From positions 357,925 through 421,924 of the forward strand of contig NW_005434645.1 in assembly GCF_000315625.1 (NCBI RefSeq): 64,000 bases of DNA. The letters run 5' to 3'. Below, in pieces: positions 107 to 60,011 of the stretch. Under the pieces are notes generated by a model. That model was not told the origin of the DNA, did not search any database, and was given only the letters and a program-made list of their open reading frames with translations. The position numbers and the translations under genes are program-made. How positions within the stretch are numbered: the stretch's first letter is position 1; each line of letters starts with the position of its first letter. The stretch comes from Guillardia theta CCMP2712 (lineage: Eukaryota; Protista; Cryptophyta).

Positions 107-3100
107 TCACCTCGAAAGAAGTCTCGCGGGGAAAGAGATACCTGCAAGAGTTTGAGACGTAGGAAAGAAGATCCCTTCCGAACACTCCCTTTCACCGCCC
201 CGCTCCTCCTCCTCCTCTCCCTTCCCCTTCCCCTGCCCCTGCCACTGCCACTGCTCATCACCTTCGGACTCCTCCTGGAACGCCATCCCTCTTCGGTCGG
301 AGCATCCTGAGGAGGAAGGGGGACAAGATCTCAAGGACACGCGCGCGCCACTCGGATGGAAACTTGACTTGGAGGGAGAGGAGGAGCACCTGCAGGGAGG
401 GAGAGCGGAAGGGAGCAGCGGAGGCGAGATGGGGAGGGAGAGAGATATAGATAGTGGTACAAGAGATTGAACAAGAAGATCGCGAGGCAGGAGGAGAAGG
501 AAAGCAAGGAGGGAGGGAAGAGGAGGGGAGGGAAGAAGAGGAGGGGAGGGAAGGGGAGGGGAGGGGAGAGGAGAGGAGAGGAGAGGAGGGGAGAGGAGAG
601 GAGAGGAGGGGCGAGGGAGGAGAGTGACATAGGAGACATTCACGTGAGACGTAGTTGAGCATCAAGCGAAACTTCACCTGTGCAAACTCCTCATCTCCGT
701 ACGAGTCTTCTGCGAACTGCTGGGCTAGTGCGATGAAAAGCTCTCGCGGGTGATGCCGAGACTTGTGCTGCTGCATCTGCTGCAAGCTCTCCACTGCACG
801 AAGTCAATCCAATGAAGCTAAGAGGGAGGAGGGAAGAGGGAGGAGGGAGGCAAAGCAGAGGAGGGAGGAAGAAACAGGCAAGGATAGCATGAGGAGCAGG
901 AAGGAGGAGGCAGACCAATGTCGCAGCTCGTCAGCGTTGATGTCCAGGAGGGCGACAAGCTATCCTCCAGCTGTCTTCTCATCAAGCTGCTTGTCAGCTG
1001 GTGCATGTAGATGGCATTTCCCAGCAGGTAGACCGAGATTACATCGCAGAAGATGATCCCGTGCATGGAGAGCCGACTCGTCTCCTCCTCCTCCGCACCT
1101 CTCCCCTCTGTCTCCTTTTGCTTCCTTGTTGCTCTCTTTACGCCAACGACGATCTCACGAGGAAGAAGAGCGAGCGTTCCGAGCGTGTACACACAGGCTC
1201 TCTGCATGGTCGGCGTGAGGAGGTGGAGGTCCTGGGCCTCGTTCTTCTGCTTCTGGGCAGCATGGAGGGGTTGGAGGAGGAAGTCCGGCTGCAAAGGGAG
1301 GAAGGAAGAGCACCAGGGGTGAGCGAGGCTAAGGACGCGGAGACTGTCGCGAGTCCACAGAGCTCGGGAGAGCATGACGATCCCTTCGCCCTCCGAGCTC
1401 AGAAGGTTCAGCAGCCAGTCAGCGTAGAAGTCGAAGAGGATGCGAGGGGAAGGCGCTATTTCTTTTGAGTCCATACAGGCGAGCTGCCTCCCTACCCCTG
1501 CCATGTCTGCGTCCTTGCCCTCAGCAGCAGCAGCCACCATCACCTCGAGAGCGGGAAGGAGCAAGATCTCGTCTCCTGCGCGGACGGCAGAAGTGAGGAC
1601 CCGCGCTCCTTCGCGTACACACTCAAGTCGACTCGTCCCGTCCACATGTACATCGTCGTCTTCCAACCAGGAGGAGGGAGAAGAGAACCACGTCATGAGC
1701 TCTGTCAGGAGGAAAAGCTTCGATCGATGTGACAGGCTGAAGTCTCTTGATATCAAACTGTCTGCATCCTCCAAACATCTCTTCAGGCTGTCTCCATGCT
1801 GGGAATGAAAGGCTCGGAGGAGCTGAACTAGTCGCCTGCTCCTCTCATCTCGCTGAACCTCCTCTTGAGATAGGGTAGAGGAGAAGCGAGGAAGAGGGAG
1901 GGGACCTTGCGAGCTCCCGAAGCGAGCTGCATGCTTGACCAGGAAGTCTTGCGCGAGTGATCGCGACTTGCTCGATGCGCAATCAGGGGAGCAGGAAATC
2001 TCAACGACGAGAGCGATCGAGTTCAAGAATCTGAGACAGGAATGCATGAAGTTGTGAACTACATGCGATGTCTCTTCGTCCAACTTGTTGTTCCCGTAGC
2101 TCTGCTCGAAGACAACCGACAACAATTCTGCATGTTCGCTCCCTCCCATCTCTTGATCTCCCAACAGAGTCACAAAGGACTTGTCTGCCACATCCACTGC
2201 ATCTGCAACACAAATCTTCTCATCGCGAACGAGGCACGAGAAGTAACTTGACAGAACATGGAAGACTTGCGTAAGGAGGACGAAAAGAGAGTTCATCTCC
2301 CCACTCAGGATGCGTTCAGTCTTCAGGTTGCTGGTGGTGGTATTGTCGTTTCTGCTGGAGGGGGAAGAGGAGGAGGGAGGTCGTCGAAGGAGGAGGAGAA
2401 GGCGGTTCATTACCACCCCTCCAACCTCTTGGCAGACTTCCAGCCATGGCATGATGTGTGCCCAACTGACGCCCAGCTGGCTGGCCGCGAGAATGATTGC
2501 TTCCTCCACCACGACCAGAGAGCGGCTTGCGAGCATCGTCCTGTGACAAGACCTTCGCTTCTTCCCCTTTCCCTCCTCCTGCTCTTGCACTTCCTCCCTC
2601 AGCCATTCCAAGCAGGAGCTGGAGTCCTTTGCCCCCGCAAAGCTCCCAACGAAGGTTTGGAGGAGGATGGAAAAGTCAGCAAACGAGTCTCCCCCGATGC
2701 CGTAGGACAGGCAGACGGTCCAACAGGAAAGCGCCTCCTCCGCTATCGCACATTTCCCAGCCGTCCAAGAGATTTTCTGGCCAGAGAATGTGTGGAGGAC
2801 AGTAGCATGCTGAGTCCCAGCGGTCTCCGAAGGCAACAAGTGCTGTTTCATCAGCTCGAAGATTCCGCTCTGGAGCAGGGAAAGGCAGATCGTCCTCGAG
2901 GACTGGCAGAGCAGCCTAACTATGCGCAAGGAGAGCAGGACAACTCGGATCTGCTGCTTCTCCTCCTCTGCTCTCTTGGTGGAGCTGGAGGCGGGGAGAG
3001 CGCCGACGTGAGCATACAGCAAATCAAGCAGCCCCGGCGTGTTATGGACTTGCTCACAGCAGCCGGTAGAGTGCTGACTGAAAAGGGCAAGGAGCTGTAG

Positions 3101-4924
3101 AAGGAGAACCTGAAGATTCAGATTCTGTGCTGTTTGCATAAGCGCGACGATCTTAGGCAACGTCTGCATGTTCACCAATCCTACGATGGGGTCTGCCTGC
3201 GCGATGGATTGTTCTGCTAGCAACTGCTCTTCCTCCGCATCTGCAGACAGTGATCCGAACGATGCCTTGCTCTTGCTCGTGCTCTTGTCTTTGCTAGCAA
3301 GATTGCTCTGCGCCACCAGAGAAGCTTGACGGGCGGTCTGGGTGAAGAAAATTTCTCTCTCGCGGTACTGGATGGAGACATATTGCACTTCAAGCACATC
3401 CTTGCTCTGCAAGAAAGTCCATCCCATCCAACTGCTCCCGCTCACGCCATACTCCTCGTCCTCCCTTGCGTTCGAGCTGCCGTTCTCTTCCTCCTGCTTG
3501 AGAGAGAGAACAGACGCGATGCAGAGGTGGACAGCAGCTCGGAGAGATTCGAGCAGGTACGTCACGTTCTTGTCATCCATCCCACATCGAATCACAACTG
3601 CCGCACCGTTCTGGAGAAGATGGTGCAGGAGCAGCGAAGTTTTCACTCCTGCCTTCGCTATCCTCCTGAAGATGCTCGACAGCGTCTTCATGGCGATCGA
3701 CCGCTGCCCGGCGAAGGAGCTCCGGCACAACCGGATCAACTCTGCAACGGTGTATCCCGCCTCAGATGGCTTGTCCCCGTGATGGTGCAGCCCCTCCTGC
3801 ACTGAGATCTTCTGAGACGGGGCCATCAGGTTCCCATCGAAGTCAAACCGAAGGTCGCCGACGTCTTTAGATGCGAGCTCTTGAGCAAACCTCTTCGACC
3901 TCTCCACCTCGTCATCCCCTTCCATCGAGTCTCCCACAACCTTGTGCTCCTCGTCCTCATCCAAGTCCCCCATCCACTGCATCTTTGCAATGTCTTCTTC
4001 ACTCGGCTCAGGCAGGTTACAGAACAAACCTTCAGCCATCCCCTCCTTGACAAACTTCGGCAGCGCTGGAGCAACGGCTGCCACCTCCTTCCCTGCTTCG
4101 CTCTTGGACTGCTTCTTGCTCTCGGCTCTTCTTCGGATCATCGCCAACAGCTCAGGATCAACGCTTGCCTCGATTTCCCTGCGCATCAATGTCTTCTCCT
4201 CCTCACTCATGCCTTGCAGTATCTTCCTGCTCTCGCTCTCGATCTCCGCTGCAGACGGCAAGCCCTTGCTAGGTTCCGCAGCACCCTCTTGACTCCACCT
4301 CACACTTTTACCGGACTTGCGAGAGTCCATGCTGGGCCCCGGGTCAGCTTGCGCTGCCCTCTCCTGCACTTCAGACGTGCAGCTCTCGGCGACGGGGTGC
4401 TCAGGTTGGACGGATCGATGGCTCGCTACGATTGTTGGACGTCAGATCGGGAGTTGTGCGTACATGGAAGTCACCTATAGGATACGGTGTCGTCCGCAAT
4501 GACGGGGCAGCAGGCACGAAGTTGCTTGTGTTCTTCTCAATGATCTTCATGTCCATGACACCTCCCATGGGAGATGCCGAGGGAGCCGAGGGCTTCCTTT
4601 CATGCTCAGCAGTTCCTTCCCTTTCTTTCTGGCTCCTCCGTTGCTGCGCAAACTTCGAAAGCTTTTTGGCTGGTTCGATCTGCTCCTCCTGCTTCTTCCG
4701 TACAACAGTCGCTGCAGGTGTTCCCTGAAACCCAAGGATCGTGAGTAAGCATGGGAGGAAAGATGGAGAGAAGGGAAGGCGGGAAACGTTAGGTAAGTAA
4801 GTCATTGAGACCGCAAGTAGGCAGGCAGGCAGAGGTTCTGCGAAATCACCTTGGTCTCAAAGAACTTCTGTTGTTGTCTCAGCAGGGATTCTTCAGATGT
4901 GTCGTTGAGCATCAACTTCTTCAT
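107..4924 (-). CDS. RPAP1: RNA polymerase II-associated protein 1 (RPAP1/Rba50/MINIYO family), multi-exon; 3' end may run off the window
   Basis: The long exon (ORF 818-4369) holds an RPAP1_N-like motif (EIESESRKILQGMSEEEKTLMRREIEASVDPELLAMIRRR) and an RPAP1_C-like motif (LRFDFDG...GLHHHGDKPSEAGYTVAELIRLCRSSFAGQRSIAMKTL). Upstream exons MKKLMLNDTSEESLLRQQQKFFETK and GTPAATVVRK join through GT-AG introns. Confidence 0.9.
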
Positions 4925-5422
4925 GACGCTGGAGGGAGCTATTGTCTTCCCCACCTGTCGAGCCATCATCAAACACCATGCACTTTCCTGTGCTTCTCCC
5001 CGTACCGGCTTCATCATCAGCGCTTTCCTCCTTATTGCCGCCTGATGAATCCATGACACTCAGTCTGGTGATCGGACGATCAGAGGGTACCCAAGCTCAC
5101 CTGTCTCCATCCACCCATCTCCTCCTGCTCCTCCTCTTCCTCCTCCTCCTCTCCATCATCCACCTCTTGCTGCATGTTTCGCTCAGTGGACATGCGCCCG
5201 AACTTTCTGAACTGCCCTCATCCCCGCTCCTTTCCAAAATTGCTAGTCCGTTACCTGACGTTATGGCGACTGCCAATAGTACCCCCCTGAGGCCGTACTT
5301 TAGCTCACCAGGAACCCCCTTTACCTCCACCCTTGAAATACACGATATAACCACGGGTGAAGGTACTATTTTTGTCCACCCCACCTATCTCGACTTGTCA
5401 ACTTGTAATGACAGTTTGGAAA

Positions 5423-6468
5423 ATGCAGCCCGGAGCGATTAGCAAGAAGGGGGAGGGCGCCACTTCGCGCGGCTCTGACGAGGAGAGAAGGAAAGGAGAG
5501 GAAGACCGAAGTAGCCATGGAGCCAGAAGTATGCTCTCAACCGCTTCTCAGGCTCGGAGCTGTCAAAGTGACAGCACTGCGTCTGCGTTTGCCAGCTTAT
5601 CTGGTCTGAGCAATGGAGAGCTCTTCAGGAGGTTGACGATGTCGAGAGGTTCCTCAAGCTTGTCCAGAAACTCCAGACGCTCTTATCCTGCCTCTCTCCC
5701 CATCTCCTGTAAATCTTCTCGCCCCGACACCGCAAGTTCCACCTTCAGCGCGAGCGATGACTTCGACGACGCTGAGCTTGAGCTTTGGTTACGCATGAAG
5801 CAACTCAAGAGGTTTGCGATTGGACTCAAGAGTGTTGGAGTGGAACATCTAGATGATGTCGCAAAGGTTTGTCCTCCACTTCCACCTCTGACCCTTTCTC
5901 CTTCTGACTTTTGACTGGCAAGCTGACGACGGTTGATCTTGGGGACCTTGGAACCAGGTTCGAGTGGACGTTGGATGAGGTTCTACACTTGGCAGAGTAG
6001 GAGGTCAGTGACGGAAGCATCTCAAACTGACCAGCATGATGCAGGAACGTCAGAGATCTCAGCATCAATCGCCTCGTGCGCAGGCGGGAGGTCTACCATC
6101 CTGAGAGTCGGGCGGGGGATGTAGCAGCGAGAGAGCAGAGTACCCCTCAGATCTTGGAGCTGGAGGCAGACGAGATGTCGAGGCCGGGGACTCGCTTCAT
6201 CCCGCAAAGACATGGTCTCTGTCCCCGACTGCGCCTCCCACGCGCAAGAATCGCAGAGCCAAAGCAGAGGACTGAGCGAACGGCTCCACCGTTGCTGCGC
6301 AAAGATCAGCTCACGTATCGAAGTCAGGAGGAGCCGCGGTCTCAGCCTCAGGGGCCCAGTGCCTCCAGCAGATCCCGCAGGCTGCAGAAGTTGAAGGACA
6401 TGAAGGACGCCAAGGTGAACAAGGAGATTCGAGATTGGGCCAAGAGATGCGAAAGAGCTCTACAGTGA
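5423..6468 (+). CDS. Hypothetical Ser/Arg-rich protein with a probable SAM domain (spliced)
   Basis: ELWLRMKQLKRFAIGLKSVGVEHLDDVAK, continuing after an intron as LTTVDLGDLG, resembles a SAM domain. The last exon (ORF 6076-6468) ends in a helical basic tail. Start codon uncertain. Confidence 0.5.
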
Positions 6469-6732
6469 GGTCTATCTTGTGAAAGCGTATCGAAGTCAGG
6501 AGGAGACGCCGTCTGAGCCTCAGGGGTCCAGCGTTCTCCAGCATGTATGGTATGAGAGTGAAAATGTTGTCCTATGAAAGGTGATTCACAAGGCCTCGGG
6601 ATCCAAAACTATAACCCGCGATGCTCGAAGAATGTGTACCAAGTCGTGAGCATAATAAGCATACACTTATCGGCATTCACTTCGTGAAAGATAGTTCTCT
6701 TTATCGGTCTGTGTATCTCACGACTAGAAGAT

Positions 6733-8679
6733 CTATGTCGGGGGCTTCGGATTGTAGGGAAATGGGGGAGGGCGGGGGCGCAGCGTCCCTTGATTCGTAT
6801 CATCGTTGAGCTGTACAGGAGGTGCCATGGCAGGAGGAAGCTTCGGCGCATCTTTGGGAGGCGGGCAGGGAGCAACATTCTGCTGCCCTCGTGGTACGAA
6901 CGCTTCCACACGTTCAACACGATCTGGAGCAGGAAGTTGTTGGGTTGCATCCTTGGGAACCGCTCCTCCTGAGCTCTGAGTGGGAGCGGCCTTGGCTTGC
7001 TTTCCTTCTGTCGCAGAGCTAGAAAACCATGAGAACAATCCTCTTCCTCCCTTCTTTGCATCTCCGGCTTTGGAGGGCACCGGAGGCTCTGCCGCTGGCT
7101 GGGGCTTAGCTGGCTTCTCCCACTGCGTCAGTCCGAGGTCCTTGTTGTAGAAGTAAGTTCGTCCTGAGCGGTAGTCCAACGCTGATTTCCACCCTAGAGG
7201 AAGGTCGTCTATATCCGCTGCTGCCGTAGGCTTGCCGGCCATGGCAGTTATGGACTGGCCGGCTGGGGCCGCGGCCTGACCTGCTGGGGCCGCGGCCTGA
7301 CCTGCTGGGGCCGCGGCTGTCTGACCTGGAGGAGCCGCGGGCTGACCTGCTGGGGCCGCAGCTGTCTGACCTGGAGGAGCCGCGGGCTGACCTGCTGGGG
7401 CCGCGGGCTGACCTGGAGGAGCCGCGGGCTGACCTGCTGGGGCCGCGGCCTGACCTGGAGGAGCCGCGGCCTGACCTGCTGGGGCCGCGGCTGTCTGACC
7501 TGGAGGAGCCGCGGCCTGACCTGCTGGGGCCGCGGCTGTCTGACCTGGAGGAGCCGCGGGCTGACCTGCTGGGGCCGCGGCCTGACCTGGAGGAGCCGCG
7601 GCCTGACCTGCTGGGGCCGCGGCCTGACCTGGAGGAGCCGCGGCCTGACCTGCTGGGGCCGCGGCTGTCTGACCTGGAGGAGCCGCGGGCTGACCTGCTG
7701 GGGCCCCGGCCTGACCTGGAGGAGCCACGGCCTGACCTGCTGGGGCCGCAACTTGACCTGGAGGAGCCGCGGCCTGACCTGCTGGGGCCGCGGCTGTCTG
7801 ACCTGGAGGAGCCGCGGGCTGACCTGCTGGGGCCGCGGCATGACCTGGAGGAGCCACGGCCTGACCTGCTGGGGCCGCGGCCTGACCTGTCGGATTTACC
7901 TGGCTAGCTGCCACTGTATCACTTTGCAAGGCACTGAAAACGTGCTGCGGGATGGAGGCCGGCTTCGGAGGAAGTCCAGCAGGTCGAGGAGTCGTAGGGG
8001 GCTGAGGAACAAGGGGGGTCGACGATTTCTTGGCTTCTTCAGGGCTCTTGACAAGGTCGTCGAATCCTTCAGGTGCCTGTGCACGGGCAGCTGTAGCCTG
8101 CGCAAAAGTTGCTGGCTTCATCGGTGGGGGAGGAGGCTTTCTCCGGGGAGGGGAAGGCTTCGTGATGTTGCTCAATGCTTCTGAGATCTTGGATGTGTCA
8201 AAGTCAGGCAGCTTGTCTGGCATCATATCTGAGACGTCGAAGCCAGCAGTTTGGTTTTGTCCATTGCCAGCATCTCTCGGTTCAAGCACACTTCCTGGGT
8301 GAACTCCAGGCTGCGGATCTGCGATCGCTTGCTGAAGCTTTCGTTCCTGCCGGGCAGCTCAGACAACATCAGCATCCCGGTCAAGCAGCTTTTACCTGAT
8401 CCAGCTCCACGTACGCTTGTAGCGTGCTGTTCCTGTCGGATAGGCCTATTTTGCGAAGCGAGTCAACCAAAGATTGTACAGACTCCTCTCGCTCCCGGGT
8501 AATATTTGAAAGATAGTCAGCGAGAAACCTGCGTGTGCGAGTGAGACTGTGGACTTGAACAGAAATCCTCGCCTGTAGCCGTTGAGCCTCGCAAGCTTGC
8601 TAGGAGTCTTCCCCATGTCGTTCTCTCGCTCAGGGTCGCTACCAGCCTCTAGCAACACTTCCACCTGCAGGCAGCTCAG

Positions 8680-52114: not shown

Positions 52115-53644
52115 ATGTCTGAACTGCAACATGAACCACACAATGATAGGGAAGAATTGTGGACACATACAGATCCGCCAGAGCTAGAGCAGGAGGAGCC
52201 GGTGGCAAAGAAGTTGAGGTTGAGTGAGGATTCAAGAGATGATGCAGAGGGCTCGAAGGAGGCGAAGGAGGAGGAAGAAGACATTTTTAGCGCGAGTGGG
52301 TCAGAAGACTCCATTGACCTAGAGAACTGTCAAAGTTTGGGTGAACTGAAGGCGCTTTGCATGCAAAAGTTTCAAACTTCGCAGCAGTTACTGGATTACA
52401 TCCACAGGAAAGGAGGCAAGCACCTGTTACAGATGCTCCCGTTCCTCATGAGCAGACCTCGCCTGAAGCTTCCAGGCATCAATACGCTAGATGATGTCTG
52501 CCGCCTGTTCAAGAGCAGCAACAACATTCTTGTCTTGACTGGTGCAGGAGTCAGCGTCAGCGCAGGCATTCCTGACTTCCGCAGCTCGACCGGCATTTAT
52601 GCTCGCCTCCACAGAGAGTTCGGTATGCCGCGGCCTTCGTGCATGTTCGATCGGAACTACTTTGATGCCAACCCGAAGCCGTTCTTCAACTTCGCGCATG
52701 AGCTCTGGCCCGGCAACTTCCAGCCGACGCCGTGCCATCATTTCATTGCGATGCTGGAGCAGAAGCACAAGTTGCTTCGAAACTACTCGCAGAATATCGA
52801 CACGTTGGAGCAGAAAGCGAACATCAGGAGAGTGATCAACTGCCATGGCTCCTTTGCAACTGCCACGTGCGTGTCTTGCGGCCACCGGGTGGAGGGCAAG
52901 GACATTGAGCTCGATATTCTCAGAAAGCGCGTGGCAAAGTGCCCGGTGTGTTATGGGGACGACCAGAAGTCTGACTTGGGGGCGAGCGAAGCTGGAACCG
53001 AGCTTGATGCCAAGCTGAGCGAAGAATCGTGCGCTAGCGCCGCTTCCATGTCGCCTTCCTTCGGTGTGTTGAAGCCGGACATCGTCTTCTTCGGGGAGGC
53101 GCTTCCTAACCACTTCTTCTCGAGCCTGAGGGAGGACCTGAGGCTGGTGGACCTCGTCGTGGTGATCGGCACCTCGCTGCGCGTCGCTCCTGTCTCGGAG
53201 ATCTTAGGAGAGGTGGAGGCGTCGGTCCCTGCTATCTTGATCAATCGTGAGGTTGTTGGAGCCCCGAACCAGTTCGACGTCGAGCTGCTGGGGGACTGCG
53301 ATGCCGTAGTTGGAGAGCTTTGCTGCATGTTGGGATGGGACGATGGCAAGGTTCCTGTGTCAAGCTCGACGTTGAAGTCTGCAGAGGATGTGACAGAGGG
53401 AAAGACTGGAGAGTATGGAGAAAGACTGATCAGCAGGGCGGTCGAGGAGGGGCATGTAGTGTTCCAGCAGCCGTCGACGTATTTCTTTAAGGGGTTCTCG
53501 ACGGATGCTGGAGGTCAAGTGGAGGAGGACGATGGGAGTGAGTTCGACCCAGGAAGCGACAGCGACGACAGTGTGTCTTACCCCGAGAGGGCCTCCAGCC
53601 ACTCGACTGTCGCCAAGTCCTCGACAGATGCAGGGAGAATGTAG
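52115..53644 (+). CDS. SIR2: Class I sirtuin (SIR2/SIRT1-like NAD-dependent deacetylase); intronless
   Basis: GAGVSVSAGIPDFRS, LRNYSQNIDTLE, CHGSFATATCVSC...CPVC zinc site, KPDIVFFGEALP, GTSLRVAPVS, ILINRE and LLGDCD. Confidence 0.95.
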   Translation: MSELQHEPHNDREELWTHTDPPELEQEEPVAKKLRLSEDSRDDAEGSKEAKEEEEDIFSASGSEDSIDLENCQSLGELKALCMQKFQTSQQLLDYIHRKGGKHLLQMLPFLMSRPRLKLPGINTLDDVCRLFKSSNNILVLTGAGVSVSAGIPDFRSSTGIYARLHREFGMPRPSCMFDRNYFDANPKPFFNFAHELWPGNFQPTPCHHFIAMLEQKHKLLRNYSQNIDTLEQKANIRRVINCHGSFATATCVSCGHRVEGKDIELDILRKRVAKCPVCYGDDQKSDLGASEAGTELDAKLSEESCASAASMSPSFGVLKPDIVFFGEALPNHFFSSLREDLRLVDLVVVIGTSLRVAPVSEILGEVEASVPAILINREVVGAPNQFDVELLGDCDAVVGELCCMLGWDDGKVPVSSSTLKSAEDVTEGKTGEYGERLISRAVEEGHVVFQQPSTYFFKGFSTDAGGQVEEDDGSEFDPGSDSDDSVSYPERASSHSTVAKSSTDAGRM

Positions 53645-53877
53645 ATTATCGCCATGGCCATTGTGAGATTGTTCAACTGAATTAGATGATTCTGATGAAA
53701 TGAAGGAAATGGAAGCAAACTTGGTTTGATTTCAACCTTACAACAGACATTATGAACATCTACACTTCCACCCCCTCCCCGGACCCTGACCTACCCCTCC
53801 TCTTCCTCCTCCTCCTCCTCCACCTCCTCCTCCTCACACTTGTCTCCTCTCTAGGGGAAACATCCTCCAAGGAATCG

Positions 53878-56800
53878 TCAGTTCAGGATTTTCATCCGCA
53901 GAAGTTCGCGGGTCTCGGCAGCCAGGCAGATTTTTTCTCCCGAGCAGGCAATGGCGGCGATCGAGTTGGGCGCCTTGAAGAAGGCGCAAGGGACCATGGC
54001 AGCGCTGGCATCGGTTGGGACGTGATACACCAGCAGCGAGCCCAGCTGGCTGGCGAGCACGAACTTGTCCGTCGAGATGACGTGCTGTGCTTTGGAGTCC
54101 CAGCGGAGGAGGCAGGAGGAAGAAGCTACATCCCACATCATCAGCATCCCGTCTTGACTGCAGCTAAGCAGCGTCCCCGGTCGGGGGAACCGCAAGTGGT
54201 CCACCGAGCTCTCGTGCCCCACCAGGTCAGATCCTGCTGGCGATCCCTCCAGGAAGTGCCAGAGCTTTATCCGCCCGTCCTGCCCTCCGCTCGCCAGCAC
54301 GTTCGGGCTCGACGGGCTGCAGGCCAGGGAGGCGACTCCGCTGTCATGCCCCCTGAGCGTCCTCCTCAGCTCCCCCCTGCTGATGTCCCACACCCTCACC
54401 GTGCTGTCGGCGCTGCCGCTTGCCAGCACCCCAGGGTCGCTGGGGTGGAAGAGGACGCAGCAGACGGCTCCCTGGTGCCCCTGCAAGGGAGGGAGCAGCA
54501 TGGCTCGCTTGTCGAGGTCCCAGAGTCGAACCGTCATGTCTGAGCTACAGCTGGCCAGCATGCTGGGCTTGTGAGGGCTGAAGCTCACGTCCAGGACATA
54601 GTCAGCGTGTCCTCCCAGCCCGGCGCTGCTGGGCTCGCCGGTTTCAAAGTTCCAGACTTGGATGGTAGTGTCGGAGCTGCACGTCGCCAACCTCCTGGGC
54701 TCCTCGTGACTGAAGGCAATCTTGAAAATTTTTCCTGTGTGCGCCTCCTCATCCTCCTCCTGCGGCTGATCCCGTTCCACCACCCAGATCTTGACGGCAT
54801 GATCGCTCGACCCGGACACAAGTATCCTGCCGTCCCCGTTGAAGCAGAGCGAGTTGATCCTCTTCTCGTGCCCCCGGAACACAGCATGCACAGCCCCGTC
54901 TCGCCTTCTCCACAGCCGAATCGTCTTGTCCTCGCTGCCACTCGCAAGAAACTCTCCGTCCCTGGTCCACGCAACCGCGTGGATCTCCCGTGCATGCCCT
55001 TTCAGCACGAGCCGATCCTCGCCAGTCTGAATCTCCCACACCCGCACTGTCCTGTCCTCACCAGCGCTTGCCAGCTCGTCCGAGGACGAGGGGTTGAAGC
55101 TTACAGCGCGCACCCAGTCAGCATGCTTGGTGTAGGCGAGGAGCTCGCGGTTGGTGGTCAGGCTCCAGATCCTCACGGTCTCGTCGTAGCTGGAGGATGC
55201 GACCAGCTGCTCGTCGTTGGGATGAAACTGCAGGCAGGTGATGCCCCCCTCGTGCCCCCGCAGCGACGCTTTCAGCTCCCCCGTCCTAGCATAGCACACA
55301 AAGATGGACTCCTCGCTCCCTCCCAGCTCTCCTCCAGCTACAGCGATGTAGGAGGCTTGCGGGGAGAAGGTGACTGTGTTGAGGATGGTGGCGAAGGAGC
55401 GAGGAGCTGCGAACTCTTCCCAGGTCTTCACGTTCCACATGCACATCCTCTGATCCCACCCAACACTAGCAAGCATGTCGCTGCTGGGGCTGTAGCAGAC
55501 GGACGAGACCTGCTCAAAGTGGCCTCGGAGGACGGAGCGGACCTCGCCTGTCTTCGTGCTGCAGACAACGACGGTGCCGTCGGCACTGGAGCAGGCGATC
55601 TGCTTGCCCGAGGGGGAGATGGCGACGGACACGACGGAGCTCTGGTGCTCTTGTATGGTGAGGACGCAGGGATGGGAGACCAGAGGCTTGTTCAGCCAGT
55701 CGATGAGCATCGAGTCGAAGTTGCTGCGGAACAGCTCGCTGTTGCGGAAAGCGCGGAGGACGGAAGACCGGTCCGGCTCCTGGAAAGCAAGCTGAAAGGA
55801 GGGGTTCGGGCACAGGGGAGCCCTCCAGAGCTCGAGGTTCCTGCCTATGAAGCCCTTCACCTCGTGCAGCGCGACCACCGAGTCCGGGAAGACCTTGAGA
55901 GCAAGCGAGCACTCTCGCAGGAGCTCCACAATCCCCTCCTCGAGCTTCGCCGTCAGGTACTCCAGTGAGCAAAGCTCGGCGACCCCGCGCTGCTCGTCTC
56001 GACACGCGATGAGGTGAGGGACGAGGACGTGGAGCCTGCGGCGGTTCAGCACTCTCTCCGATGCAGGAGCAGCGATGCTCCCGTGCAAGACGATGGGCTG
56101 AGCAGGGACCAGCCGGTCACCTGCCTGCTCGTTCCTCTGCTGGAGCAGCTCACGCAGCTTACCCGTGTAAGGTTTCATCCTCCTGCTCCATGTGCCATCG
56201 AAGAAATCTGCTAGCTCGCTGTGCCGTTGGATCCTCTCCTTGTAGCCCATCGCGCTGCCGAAGAGCCAGCTCTCAATCGCCTCCTCTACCTTGCTATGCC
56301 TCCAGCACAAGCTCGCGTCCCTCCTCCCATCCGAGTAGCGGTAGAGGAGAGGACGAGCGTCATGCAGGAGTGACTTGACAAGGAAAGGGGGGAGGATGCG
56401 CATGGAAGGGACGGACCAGAAGTACGCCTCAGCCAGCACGTCGTCCTGGAGGCAGAGCAGATGGAACAGTTCTTGCTCGTGGAGGAAGTGAGCGCTGGAG
56501 AGGGTGAAGTAGCAGAAGGTTGCCCTGACTAGCTCGACCCCATGCTTCGCCTGGAGAGCATCGACTTGGTCGATGATGAGACCGTTGAGCGAGGGGTTGA
56601 TAGAGGAGAGGACACCCACGGAGGAAGGCCACTCCTGGACCAGCGAGGCCACGAGCGAGAGCCAGAGGGTCGAGCACGCTTCCTCCCTGCGAGCCACCGC
56701 CTGAGAGATCTCTGACCACTGGTCGTTGGTGATCCTCCTCCTGCTCTTCAACAGTAGCTGATTCACAAAAGCCTTCACATCCTTCACGCACATCAGCGTC

Positions 56801-58938
56801 AGGTCCTTCGGCCTTCCCGCATGATTCATCTGCTCCTGCCCCTGGCCATCGCCGTCGGCGAGCGTGAGGACGATGCGGACATGGGGAGGGAGTGCAGCGG
56901 TCGGGAGCCAGTCGAGGTAGGACTTGGAGTAGCTCTCCTCCAGTTCGTCCACCCCGTCGATGAACAAGATGAGCGGGAGATGCGAGCTGGGCCACTCGCT
57001 CACTGCTCGACGGAAGTAGGAGACAATGTCGCGCAGGGGCAGCACAGAGATGTCCCCGTCCTCCTCCTCCTTCCCGTACGCCCTCCGTAGCTGTTCACAG
57101 ATGCTCCGCAACAGCCCGACCCTCGTCTTCGAACGCTTTGACGCCCCAACGATGCGGACGAGAACACAACCCTTCTCCTGCTCCCACATCACATCCTTCA
57201 CCAGCTTGCACATTAAGCTTGTCTTGCCGGACCCCGCGCGGCCAAGGACGTGCATGCTGCTGCGAGACTCGTCACGGAGGTAGAGGCGGACGTTTTCCAT
57301 CACCGCCTCTGCCTCTTGGGAAGAGCAGAACTTTTCCGCCTCCTTCATGGCAAACTCCACGTGGCTTTTCACCTCCACCTCCACATCGTCGCAGTTCGCA
57401 GCTCTCATCTTAGCGCTCTCTTGCACAGCAATGCTCACATGCCGACACAGGTCGTCACACATCCTCGCTAGGTAACTCGCGTGCTCCTCATTGTGCTGAG
57501 GGTTCAGGCCGCAAGTCTTGTCGAAGGTTTGCACAAGGTAGTCAAACTTGATTGCAGTGGGGGGCAGAGAGTTCAAAAAGTTTCTGAGAAGCTCCTGAGC
57601 TTCTTCGTCCACCACCCCTCCCTCCTTCACGTCGACAAACTTCTCGTATGCAGGATCAGAGACCTTTGCTGCCTCCAGCCCCAGCAGGTTGCGATGGAAG
57701 ACCAGCTGTGAAAATTTTCCGCTGAAAGAGGATTGCAGAGCACGCGACTGGGCGAACTCACGTTCCACCATCCCAATCATCATCGACTTGAGCTCGTCGT
57801 CTTGAAGATCTTCTCCGTTCTTGGCAACTTCCATCTTCCATAACTTGTTCGCTGCCTGCATGAGAGCCGTTCTGATCTTGTCGTACTTCTTCCTCCAATC
57901 TTCATCCAGCTTTGTCATCTGCAGGACATACTCTTGCCCCTCCGTTGCTTTCTCATCCGCTCCTACCCCCTGCGAGCTCAGCTGATTTGCGTCCAGCGAG
58001 AAGAATTCTTTGACAAGCTTCCTATCACCCGAGTCGTCCACAAGCTTGACCAGCTCCTCAAACCTTTGCTTTCCTATCCTTGCAGGGAACGACACTAGAC
58101 CGTACTTGCGTCCCACGAAGAAGAGGTGAAACAGATGAGAAACGTTGGCGTGAGAAGACTTTACCTCACCCATCACCATCTCCTCATACGTGTGTATGTT
58201 TCTGAAGTCGATGTCCATCCCTAGGCGCAGGTCCAACACAACCAGCCCAACATCGTTAATGACACAGAGCTCTTGCCAGAACGGCACGACGTCCTTCATC
58301 ACTATCTCCCTCTCCCACTCGCAGTCCTCGGTCGCTGAGATCAGAACTTTGACAATGAGTCTCCGGTTGTAAGCAGCTACATCCCCCTGGAAGTCCTTCA
58401 GGCAGCCTCGGAGGAGTAAGTTCAAGTTCCTGTCCTCCTGCTCCTTCACATCGTCTGGGGTCACAACAAGCAACATCGACCCCCACTCGGTTCTGCTGCT
58501 CCGAGGAACTTCAAACCCCCTGATGCCGTCAAGACGTGTACCAGATGTTTCCTTCGTCGCCTTGTCTACCATCTCAAGGATTTTCTCTCGCTCAGCTGCG
58601 ATCTGGCTTCCGAAACCAAGATCGCGTTCATCAAACATGGACAACGAGCGATATCTAGAGTACTGTTTCCTTTTCTCCTCCCCCGTCTTCTTCTTTCCCT
58701 TGCCGAACAGAAGGCTTGACCCAGACCCTCCCCCGACAAGCTTACAGGATGCAAACAGAGTCGAGCTCTCTCGGAGACCGGCTTCCTGCAAGCTTAAATT
58801 GTCCTCGAGCTCGTGCCCAGCGTAAGTGAGTCTTAGTCTGACGCTTGGGCATATCCTCTTCCTCAGATCGCTGACTGACTCATGAGCATCTGCGTGAGCT
58901 ACACATGTTCCTCCTGCTCCAACCACAAACAGTTGCAT
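53878..58938 (-). CDS. Ubiquitin-like, DUF4062-like, NACHT NTPase and WD40-repeat protein (NWD1/TEP1-like STAND); intronless
   Basis: First ATG at 58938 opens MQLFVV...KLVGG (ubiquitin-like). VKVLISATEDCEWERE...VVLDLRLGM is NWD1/DUF4062-like. Walker A GRAGSGKT and Walker B LILFIDGVDEL are present, followed by about 12-13 GH...WD repeats. Confidence 0.92.
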   Translation of the reverse strand: MQLFVVGAGGTCVAHADAHESVSDLRKRICPSVRLRLTYAGHELEDNLSLQEAGLRESSTLFASCKLVGGGSGSSLLFGKGKKKTGEEKRKQYSRYRSLSMFDERDLGFGSQIAAEREKILEMVDKATKETSGTRLDGIRGFEVPRSSRTEWGSMLLVVTPDDVKEQEDRNLNLLLRGCLKDFQGDVAAYNRRLIVKVLISATEDCEWEREIVMKDVVPFWQELCVINDVGLVVLDLRLGMDIDFRNIHTYEEMVMGEVKSSHANVSHLFHLFFVGRKYGLVSFPARIGKQRFEELVKLVDDSGDRKLVKEFFSLDANQLSSQGVGADEKATEGQEYVLQMTKLDEDWRKKYDKIRTALMQAANKLWKMEVAKNGEDLQDDELKSMMIGMVEREFAQSRALQSSFSGKFSQLVFHRNLLGLEAAKVSDPAYEKFVDVKEGGVVDEEAQELLRNFLNSLPPTAIKFDYLVQTFDKTCGLNPQHNEEHASYLARMCDDLCRHVSIAVQESAKMRAANCDDVEVEVKSHVEFAMKEAEKFCSSQEAEAVMENVRLYLRDESRSSMHVLGRAGSGKTSLMCKLVKDVMWEQEKGCVLVRIVGASKRSKTRVGLLRSICEQLRRAYGKEEEDGDISVLPLRDIVSYFRRAVSEWPSSHLPLILFIDGVDELEESYSKSYLDWLPTAALPPHVRIVLTLADGDGQGQEQMNHAGRPKDLTLMCVKDVKAFVNQLLLKSRRRITNDQWSEISQAVARREEACSTLWLSLVASLVQEWPSSVGVLSSINPSLNGLIIDQVDALQAKHGVELVRATFCYFTLSSAHFLHEQELFHLLCLQDDVLAEAYFWSVPSMRILPPFLVKSLLHDARPLLYRYSDGRRDASLCWRHSKVEEAIESWLFGSAMGYKERIQRHSELADFFDGTWSRRMKPYTGKLRELLQQRNEQAGDRLVPAQPIVLHGSIAAPASERVLNRRRLHVLVPHLIACRDEQRGVAELCSLEYLTAKLEEGIVELLRECSLALKVFPDSVVALHEVKGFIGRNLELWRAPLCPNPSFQLAFQEPDRSSVLRAFRNSELFRSNFDSMLIDWLNKPLVSHPCVLTIQEHQSSVVSVAISPSGKQIACSSADGTVVVCSTKTGEVRSVLRGHFEQVSSVCYSPSSDMLASVGWDQRMCMWNVKTWEEFAAPRSFATILNTVTFSPQASYIAVAGGELGGSEESIFVCYARTGELKASLRGHEGGITCLQFHPNDEQLVASSSYDETVRIWSLTTNRELLAYTKHADWVRAVSFNPSSSDELASAGEDRTVRVWEIQTGEDRLVLKGHAREIHAVAWTRDGEFLASGSEDKTIRLWRRRDGAVHAVFRGHEKRINSLCFNGDGRILVSGSSDHAVKIWVVERDQPQEEDEEAHTGKIFKIAFSHEEPRRLATCSSDTTIQVWNFETGEPSSAGLGGHADYVLDVSFSPHKPSMLASCSSDMTVRLWDLDKRAMLLPPLQGHQGAVCCVLFHPSDPGVLASGSADSTVRVWDISRGELRRTLRGHDSGVASLACSPSSPNVLASGGQDGRIKLWHFLEGSPAGSDLVGHESSVDHLRFPRPGTLLSCSQDGMLMMWDVASSSCLLRWDSKAQHVISTDKFVLASQLGSLLVYHVPTDASAAMVPCAFFKAPNSIAAIACSGEKICLAAETRELLRMKILN

Positions 58939-60011
58939 CCTGTGGAGGAAAGCACTTCCTTGTAGATACGTTCTCCGCGCGTCTTTCTTTGACAATTTTA
59001 CCCAGGAGCTTGTCAGGCCCGATGCCACCTTTCGATCATTTGGCAGGAGCTAACCCCGACATTCAGGTCACGTTCAGGGTATGAGCTGGAAGATCACCTT
59101 TGAAAATGTGTCAGCCGAAAGCAGTTCTTCCGCCTCCTCTACCTCCCCGTCTACTACACTCAGCTGTCCAACGGAGCTTATCCTATCAACCCCTCAATGT
59201 TCTGGCTACATTTCAGCGTCTCGGACGCTTCCATCGGTCGTTTAGCTCGTTAGAGTGTCAGAATTGAGCTGGGTTTCTCCCACCTCCTCCCCTTGGTCCC
59301 TTCAAACCTACTTGCCGCCTAAAGATCCCAGGATCGTCAAAAGGATACACACACCCTTTGCTGCTCATCGAACGTCTTCACAAGCTCCATAGCGGCATGG
59401 TGCCACTACCAATGTCTCCTCCCTCCTTTCCCCTACGATCCTCTCCCATGCTACTTCCTTCCTCCCTTCCCTTCCTCGCCTCGCTCCTTCGTGCGCCTGT
59501 CTGGCATTCTGTACTCCTCCAACTGCCCGCCAATAACTAAAACTTTGCTACTGGTGATCGGATAGAGGGAGGTCACGTCCCCACATAAACCGGTGTTGCT
59601 CCTACTAATTCAGTGGGGAAAGAGGGGTGGGGTGGTTAGGATTTGCAGGAGGTCGTGGTTCGCAAGGTGATGGATGAAACGCAACGATCGTGATCAGAAA
59701 ACACAAGAACATCCAAACGACATGTTGATGTTGACTTGATCTTCGATGTATTCATATCGATTCAACATTCCATTGAAGCAAGGGTTTCCCAATCATGATG
59801 TTTGATGAGGAAAATCCACTTTTTTAGAATGCACGTACGCTGTGCCAAGGATCGGTGTTCACTTGCCATGCAACAGGTCCGAGCGTGAAATGTACAACTT
59901 CCTGTTGAGCAGCCAGTATAATCCTCGAGTACCATATGCGTCCTCTCACACACAACCTATCAGCCATCTTTGATCGAATGCTTTCTCGAGGGCAGATGGA
60001 GGAGAGCTTCT

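Follow-up and report, generated by a model that had tools for sequence, protein, structure and literature searches.

The subject here is a gene in a 64,000-nucleotide stretch of DNA from the cryptophyte alga Guillardia theta CCMP2712 (contig NW_005434645.1, positions 357,925 to 421,924; hereafter the window), whose product carries a ubiquitin-like domain (UBL) at its very start, directly ahead of what reads as a cryptic lipidation motif. The coding sequence lies on the minus strand at 53878..58938 and, from the list of open reading frames (ORFs) and its translation, is a single, intron-free frame of 1686 amino acids plus stop. The protein opens with MQLFVV and runs to CKLVGG at residue 70; directly adjacent to this Gly-Gly comes G71-S-G-S-S-L-L-F-G-K-G-K-K-K, and the remainder is a large STAND protein with DUF4062, NACHT and WD40 regions.

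The UBL occupies residues 1 to 70 (58729..58938, minus strand) and ends L-V-G-G, the two Gly codons lying at 58734-58729. The Pfam ubiquitin model (PF00240) matches it with an E-value of 2.1e-7 and 31.1 bits, above the cut-off of 25.4, and in alignments to ubiquitin chains of the Protein Data Bank (PDB) the terminal L-V-G-G sits ungapped on L73-R74-G75-G76 of ubiquitin. AlphaFold2, run on a four-sequence alignment, models residues 1-68 in the beta-beta-alpha-beta-beta order with confidence values (pLDDT) of 81-92 that fall right at residue 69, and the top Foldseek matches of this model are ubiquitin, with target-normalised TM-scores of 0.81-0.84 and a root-mean-square deviation of about 2 Å. 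The Gly-Gly stands at the exact end of the fold, and the residue that follows it (P1') is Gly, not Pro. When compared with ubiquitin itself the domain is strongly divergent (31 bits to the Pfam family, with the Ile44 patch lost). A first-pass annotation, made from the sequence letters and the ORF list, had described this arrangement at 58686-58938 as a 70-residue ubiquitin-like domain whose di-Gly ends at 58729 and is followed by G-S-G-S-S and KGKKK; the translation reads exactly so, and the Pfam, AlphaFold2 and Foldseek results agree on the domain. Its label of "ubiquitin/FUBI-like" holds for the ubiquitin half, as the best sequence and structure matches are all ubiquitin; nothing specific pointed to FUBI, with which no comparison was run.

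The candidate N-acylation motif G71-S-G-S-S-L (58711..58728, minus strand) was recognized by reading the sequence and by comparison with the starts of homologues. It fits the N-myristoyltransferase (NMT) consensus G-{EDRKHPFYW}-x(2)-[STAGCN]-{P}, its fifth residue being Ser, which is favoured there; as encoded, the motif Gly is residue 71, and a free N-terminus depends on a cut after G70. A residue count places a basic cluster just downstream, from K80 to R97 (GKGKKKTGEEKRKQYSRYR; 58648..58701, minus strand). Within the first 30 residues past the Gly-Gly, Lys and Arg outnumber Asp and Glu by 9 to 2, with no Cys in the window copy, and the suggestion of the annotation that a Lys cluster could provide a second membrane signal is in line with this count. 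Motif and cluster fall within a linker of residues 71 to about 140 (58519..58728, minus strand) that is predicted to be disordered, with pLDDT below 50 over residues 69-110 and a low-confidence helix at 110-130.

Conservation of the Gly-Gly and the motif behind it

The genome as searched (87.1 Mb in 669 contigs) holds two further UBL-bearing copies. L001 (C29:263500-271500, ORF 1429-6564, plus strand) lies on the window contig about 93 kb from the window start and encodes 1711 amino acids, intron-free, in the same architecture; it is 41% identical to the window protein over residues 71-560, and its UBL ends K-S-L-G-G, followed by G-C-G-P-S. L006 (C9:748000-757500, ORFs 2902-5829 and 5881-8232, plus strand) shows 28% identity and reads K-L-L-G-G, then G-C-G-A-S. 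It is split between its NACHT and WD40 parts by one short intron or frame change; its Hanusia phi orthologue, a transcript (P0004/L028) with 76% amino-acid identity, is continuous, with UBL and STAND regions in one 1758-residue frame and L-L-G-G again followed by G-C-G-A-S. Pfam ubiquitin gives L001 40.1 bits and L006 only 18.7 bits. All UBL-bearing copies open with MQ[IL]F at residue 1, as ubiquitin precursors do, and in three of the genes an in-frame stop precedes that Met: 37 codons upstream in the window copy, where the UBL Met is the earliest in-frame ATG, five codons upstream in L001, and 18 nucleotides upstream, as TGA, in the Hanusia transcript. L002, L003, L004 and L005 were rejected as family members, their UBLs being internal to long open frames and without a Gly-Gly.

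Over residues 63-136 the sole columns invariant in all four UBL-bearing sequences are G69, G70, G71, G73 and S75, whereas the linker matches at 6 of 68 positions (about 9%) between the two deep lineages, about the random level. The corresponding hexamers GCGPSR (L001) and GCGAST (L006 and P0004) also satisfy the NMT consensus. Every copy has a second membrane signal, which may be a Cys at +2 or a basic cluster or the two together: L001 has the Cys together with 9 Lys and Arg residues, and L006 and P0004 have the Cys with 3-4. The first-pass annotation had named loss of the Gly-Gly and GxxxS in homologues as evidence that would speak against its proposal; they are conserved in all the UBL-bearing relatives (L001, L006 and Hanusia phi). 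A tree built on the DUF4062-NACHT region puts the four sequences in one group (SH-aLRT 87), whose two lineages are set apart by long branches; the fusion is thus old and of single origin, and the motif has been retained ever since. The ratio of nonsynonymous to synonymous substitution rates (dN/dS) for the UBL is about 0.17 between L006 and its Hanusia orthologue, at synonymous sites that are near saturation; on this sequence comparison the domain is under purifying selection. Word-indexed protein searches gave no further UBL-bearing relatives, and as they were swamped by polyubiquitin or WD40 proteins, the blank means little.

The Gly after the Gly-Gly is not a general property of such fusions in this alga. 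In the other fusions of ubiquitin or a Gly-Gly-ended UBL found in the genome (L010, L021, L024, L027 and L018, on other contigs) the following residue is Met, Arg, Ala or Lys, never Gly. One is a UBL followed by M-P-K-K-K-G-G-K-K of a Lys-rich partner; another ends L-L-G-G before R-G-D, and a third ends R-G-G before K-K-stop. Ubiquitin itself precedes A-G-D-D-D-E-K-R-P-K in a fourth, and in the remaining one a UBL ending R-G-G leads into M-Q-V upstream of canonical ubiquitin. Within this set the Gly motif is thus specific to the STAND fusions. A published survey of algal ubiquitin fusions lists ten fusion genes in Guillardia theta, none with a NACHT/WD40 partner (PMC6332867).

Homologues that lack the UBL carry the same motif in its conventional position. 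An exhaustive HMMER search with residues 1-560 as query gave 359 matches, of which the best 150 of 359 are considered here; weaker UBL-bearing fragments could be hidden below them. Among the matches listed, 15 of 105 non-redundant, Met-initiated, UBL-less homologues have an MG myristoylation-type start that fits the NMT consensus, and 7 of those 15 begin MG[CS]GxS (MGSGSS once, MGCGPS and MGCGAS three times each). About 0.004 such starts would be expected by chance in 105 proteins, a rough estimate that uses typical residue frequencies and ignores relatedness. Among these matches the MG starts belong to NWD1/NWD2-like proteins from molluscs, hemichordates, a crinoid, amphioxus, choanoflagellates and chytrid fungi (they include P0032, P0056, P0071, P0091, P0099, P0104, P0105, P0118, P0135 and P0148), and they fall at no fewer than five places in the DUF4062-NACHT tree. 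Their motif stands 30-200 residues upstream of a unit made up of the sequence P-R-x-x-R-x-x-W and DUF4062. Because these relatives bear the same motif as a true N-terminus ahead of the same unit, the cryptophyte UBL stands where they have their start Met. Motifs for N-terminal acylation are a repeated feature of the NWD1/NWD2-like DUF4062-NACHT branch of STAND proteins, present in chytrids and choanoflagellates as well as in molluscs and hemichordates, and no report joining NWD1 with myristoylation was found in the literature searched.

Other N-termini are also represented in the family. Marine metagenome eukaryotes provide the nearest UBL-less relatives (P0161, P0166, P0005, P0158 and P0003), whose N-terminal modules include a possible CHAT/caspase-like H...C region, an EF-hand-like region and a CCCH-like region; modules have been swapped within this clade. 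P0008 was entertained as a UBL carrier on account of an apparent alignment from residue 53 and was set aside, as it has no UBL. Five more DUF4062 genes in the Guillardia theta genome differ again at the N-terminus and lack both a UBL and a clear MG start, in gene models that are uncertain. The UBL-less paralogue L007 (C49:298000-307500, minus strand around 7990) combines fn3, DUF4062 and STAND regions, and an open frame upstream of it contains M-G-N-C-I-A-A-D, which would be an ordinary myristoylation/palmitoylation start if this candidate gene model is right in making it exon 1.

Downstream domains, transcripts and the neighbouring gene

Past the linker, the P-R-x-x-R-x-x-W motif at residues 145-152 (58483..58506, minus strand) has P145, R146, R149 and W152 invariant and is present upstream of DUF4062 in UBL-less homologues as well. 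The DUF4062, or TIR-like, domain covers approximately residues 196-330 (57949..58353, minus strand). A profile of 12 family sequences, the window copy included, matches the TIR-like domain of TEP1 (11gz_A) at an E-value of 4.4e-18; the window copy alone gives a weak 0.056 and is below Pfam detection of DUF4062, which is above cut-off in paralogue L007 and weak in L006. The alignments to 11gz_A end at chain residue 88, ahead of the position of the TEP1 catalytic Glu, E1008. A STAND NTPase of NACHT or NPHP3_N type follows (56779..57273, minus strand), with the P-loop GRAGSGKT at residues 566-573; the Pfam scores of the window copy, 22.9 bits for NACHT and 20.3 bits for NPHP3_N, are both below cut-offs, and those of L006 are above them (NPHP3_N 30.8, HTH_NWD1 28.7). 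WD40 beta-propellers make up roughly residues 1088-1686 (53881..55677, minus strand; Pfam WD40 E 3.8e-95, 11 repeats, and many other propeller models). Residues 141-900 form one continuous alignment with many NWD-like proteins.

The NACHT-WD40 STAND frame of the first-pass annotation is retained, with WD40 clear and the NTPase sub-threshold in the window copy but, as NPHP3_N, above cut-off in a paralogue, and DUF4062 is added to it. DUF4062 has been described as a TIR-like NADase family that adjoins NACHT in human NWD1, NWD2, TEP1 and NPHP3, of which only TEP1 is active in vitro (preprint 10.64898/2026.05.01.722283). Judged from domain content, the window protein appears to be an NWD-like STAND protein of the NWD1/NWD2/NPHP3/TEP1 kind. 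To call it an innate-immune-type receptor would be to draw an analogy, from the likeness in architecture of its TIR-like DUF4062, NACHT and WD40 parts.

Contigs from three small, transcriptome-like sequencing runs of three studies (X1, X2 and X3), which are guessed to derive from RNA, are collinear with the gene and show no joints. The X1 contig extends over 55874-59517 and that of X2 over 56078-59100, and X3 has its 5' end at 59008; X2 and X3 coverage stops at the gene borders, at 53843 on the 3' side and at 59008 or 59100 on the 5' side. The 5' leader in these contigs (58939..59100, minus strand) contains the in-frame stop and no in-frame ATG ahead of the UBL Met. Out of frame with the UBL, two further ATGs fall within the leader at 59030-59070 (minus strand), each heading a short upstream ORF of about 8 codons, given a transcription start at position 59100 or higher. 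According to these contigs the UBL is included in unspliced transcripts that run on into the STAND region, an outcome that differs from the downstream transcript start raised by the first-pass annotation as a possible objection. A public protein of 225 amino acids, P0002, is 100% identical to residues 101-325, starts at Met101 and is the only identical protein among the matches listed; public gene models of the locus may thus lack the UBL as well as the greater part of the protein.

A convergent neighbour at 52115-53644 (plus strand) encodes a 509-residue SIR2-family protein (Pfam SIR2, E 1.3e-59), and its stop lies about 200 nucleotides from the 3' end of the STAND transcript. A gene of the NAD-consuming SIR2 family thus adjoins a STAND gene with a TIR-like domain of an NADase family, which may be coincidence.

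Cleavage, lipidation and the competing readings

The arrangement suggests that the gene encodes a pro-protein, in which a divergent ubiquitin-fold domain (residues 1-70) is translated in place of a start Met before a conserved N-acylation motif. A ubiquitin- or UBL-specific protease would cut after G70, and the new N-terminal G71 of G-S-G-S-S would then be myristoylated post-translationally by the NMT of the cell. The adjacent Lys/Arg cluster would act as the second membrane signal, and in the paralogues the Cys at +2 is a likely palmitoylation site. The outcome would be a STAND protein anchored on a membrane. Processing would most likely be constitutive, as in other ubiquitin-fusion genes. 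Deubiquitinases (DUBs) cut fusions of ubiquitin to a residue X except where X is Pro. The genome encodes an NMT (PF01233, matched exon by exon at C76:38616-39463), and it is established that NMT can modify, after translation, a Gly that a protease such as a caspase has uncovered, huntingtin being one case (PMC9880554). We put the probability that the UBL cap is cut after the Gly-Gly, that G71 is then N-myristoylated and that the STAND protein is thereby membrane-anchored at roughly 0.6; this cut-then-myristoylate interpretation, first offered in the annotation, is partly supported by the comparative evidence.

Several points weigh against it. Cleavage, lipidation and localisation are all inferred from comparison of sequences. 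The hydrophobic patch of ubiquitin, L8, I44, H68 and V70, reads A, T, F and S in the UBL, and the Leu73 position is Ser in L001, the tail of the window copy being K-L-V-G-G; because the Ile44 patch is lost and the Leu73 position varies, a general DUB may not recognize the domain, and a dedicated protease, none of which was identified, may be needed. The nearest UBL-less relatives P0003, P0008 and P0043 have other N-terminal domains and no MG starts, so that descent from an MG-start ancestor is not shown, and in the tree the MG-start relatives do not branch as sister to the UBL-bearing clade. UBL-bearing examples come from two closely related species and represent three independent lineages at most. 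Transcript support is drawn from the presumed-RNA contigs of X1-X3; the sole run that is certainly RNA, RNA-seq X14, gave only 8 reads on the STAND gene.

The most substantial of the other explanations is that the UBL stays in place as a permanent N-terminal domain, in the manner of parkin or Rad23, serving as an interaction, proteasome-docking or oligomerisation module with the Gly-rich stretch as a hinge. The lack of conservation of the Ile44 patch and the variable Leu73 position would suit this, and the UBL could be one more of the highly variable N-terminal modules of the STAND family (EF-hand-like, CCCH-like, possible CHAT-like, fn3 and possibly C2-like, of which fn3 alone is Pfam-based). 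We nevertheless regard it as doubtful, in view of a Gly-Gly that closes the fold exactly, does not vary and has Gly rather than Pro after it, whereas integral UBLs are typically without a cleavable Gly-Gly; of a hinge that would need neither a conserved G-[CS]-G-x-S nor agreement with the MG[CS]GxS starts of homologues; and of the ubiquitin-precursor-like MQ[IL]F at residue 1 of every copy. It is also conceivable that the UBL is cut off and no lipid is added, the cap having been an expression or folding aid or being released as a free, Gly-Gly-ended modifier, and the exposed Gly remaining free or acting as a degradation signal. The genome does hold the several other ubiquitin and UBL fusions already described, with unrelated partners and Met, Arg, Ala or Lys at P1', and many algal ubiquitin-fusion genes have been reported (PMC6332867); since fusions to unrelated partners are so many, fusion alone does not imply lipidation. 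What makes this explanation clearly unlikely is that P1'-P5' is kept as an NMT-type motif in the STAND fusions only, that each copy has its second membrane signal, that relatives bear the motif as a true N-terminus, and that the family member NPHP3 is myristoylated.

The first-pass annotation had left room for a protease-gated switch or decoy, to which we assign only a slim chance. The cap would then be a regulated lock or bait: the uncleaved receptor would be soluble and inactive until a stress-induced UBL protease of the host, or the DUB or UBL protease of a virus or bacterium that invades it, removed the cap, whereupon the exposed Gly would be myristoylated and the protein would move to a membrane, possibly that of the flagellum by way of an UNC119-type carrier, oligomerise there and have its TIR-like NADase domain switched on. 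If true, the protein would be an immune receptor that senses proteases by means of a ubiquitin decoy. Flagellar targeting is conceivable because the small residues past the Gly (S-G-S, C-G-P and C-G-A) agree with what has been published on the ciliary myristoylated cargo that UNC119 prefers. A GMP_PDE_delta family gene, for a lipid-binding carrier of the UNC119/PDE6-delta type, lies at C171:28550-29001 (minus strand, E 1.3e-37). Hardly credible, finally, is an artefact of the gene model, in which a downstream codon such as that of Met101 would be the true start of translation, leaving the UBL frame as untranslated leader. The Met101 start of P0002 and the two short upstream ATGs in the leader are what this explanation has in its favour; set against them, L001 has Ile at the position of Met101, purifying selection acts on the UBL frame, which is open and conserved across four genes, the UBL Met is the earliest in-frame ATG past a stop in the Hanusia transcript, and the transcript-like contigs span the UBL region.

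Relation to known systems

Proteins that share individual features with the window protein are well known. The ubiquitin and UBL fusion precursors Ub-eL40, Ub-eS31 and FUBI-eS30 likewise have a ubiquitin fold from Met1, a Gly-Gly end and an in-frame partner, and are normally cut after the Gly-Gly; the window protein differs in its 1600-residue STAND partner and in the lipidation-type motif past the Gly-Gly. Post-translational N-myristoylation after proteolysis occurs in caspase-cleaved BID, PAK2 and actin and at the picornavirus leader/VP4 junction. In those cases, as would be so here, an internal Gly in a G-x-x-x-S/T context is made N-terminal by a protease, but the enzyme is a caspase or viral protease and the site is inside the protein, whereas the window protein would lose a ubiquitin-fold pro-piece to a UBL protease, probably constitutively. 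In the ubiquitin-fusion technique, a laboratory fusion of ubiquitin to a residue X is trimmed by the DUBs of the cell to leave an N-terminal residue of choice; the technique is engineered, and the window protein appears to be a natural use of the same trick.

Within the family, human NPHP3 is myristoylated, with the N-terminus Myr-GTASS, for UNC119-dependent ciliary targeting (PMC8246649). It resembles the window protein in having DUF4062 beside a NACHT ATPase and small residues past the N-acylation-type Gly; unlike it, NPHP3 has its Gly exposed by ordinary Met removal, TPR rather than WD40 repeats, and no UBL. The NWD1/NWD2-like proteins with MG[CS]GxS starts are homologous to the window protein over P-R-x-x-R-x-x-W, DUF4062, NACHT and WD40 and have the same motif at the same end of the protein; theirs stands straight after the start Met, lipidation being predicted from the motif.

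Each ingredient is thus known singly: ubiquitin-fusion genes, myristoylation that depends on proteolysis, and a DUF4062-NACHT protein that is myristoylated. Their combination in one NLR-like protein, whose acylation motif is preceded by a ubiquitin-fold cap instead of the start Met, is apparently undescribed. The author of the first-pass annotation knew of no description of this architecture; in the literature searched no account was found of a naturally occurring UBL fusion whose removal uncovers a site for myristoylation, and no NACHT/WD40 fusion is among the Guillardia theta genes of the algal survey (PMC6332867). If the cap is indeed cut and the Gly lipidated, the gene would provide a natural ubiquitin-fold pro-domain that generates a myristoylation site, and with it a third route to N-myristoylation besides Met removal and caspase or viral cleavage. 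Because DUF4062 has only just been reported as a TIR-like NADase, membrane anchoring would also offer a testable clue to where these receptors act.

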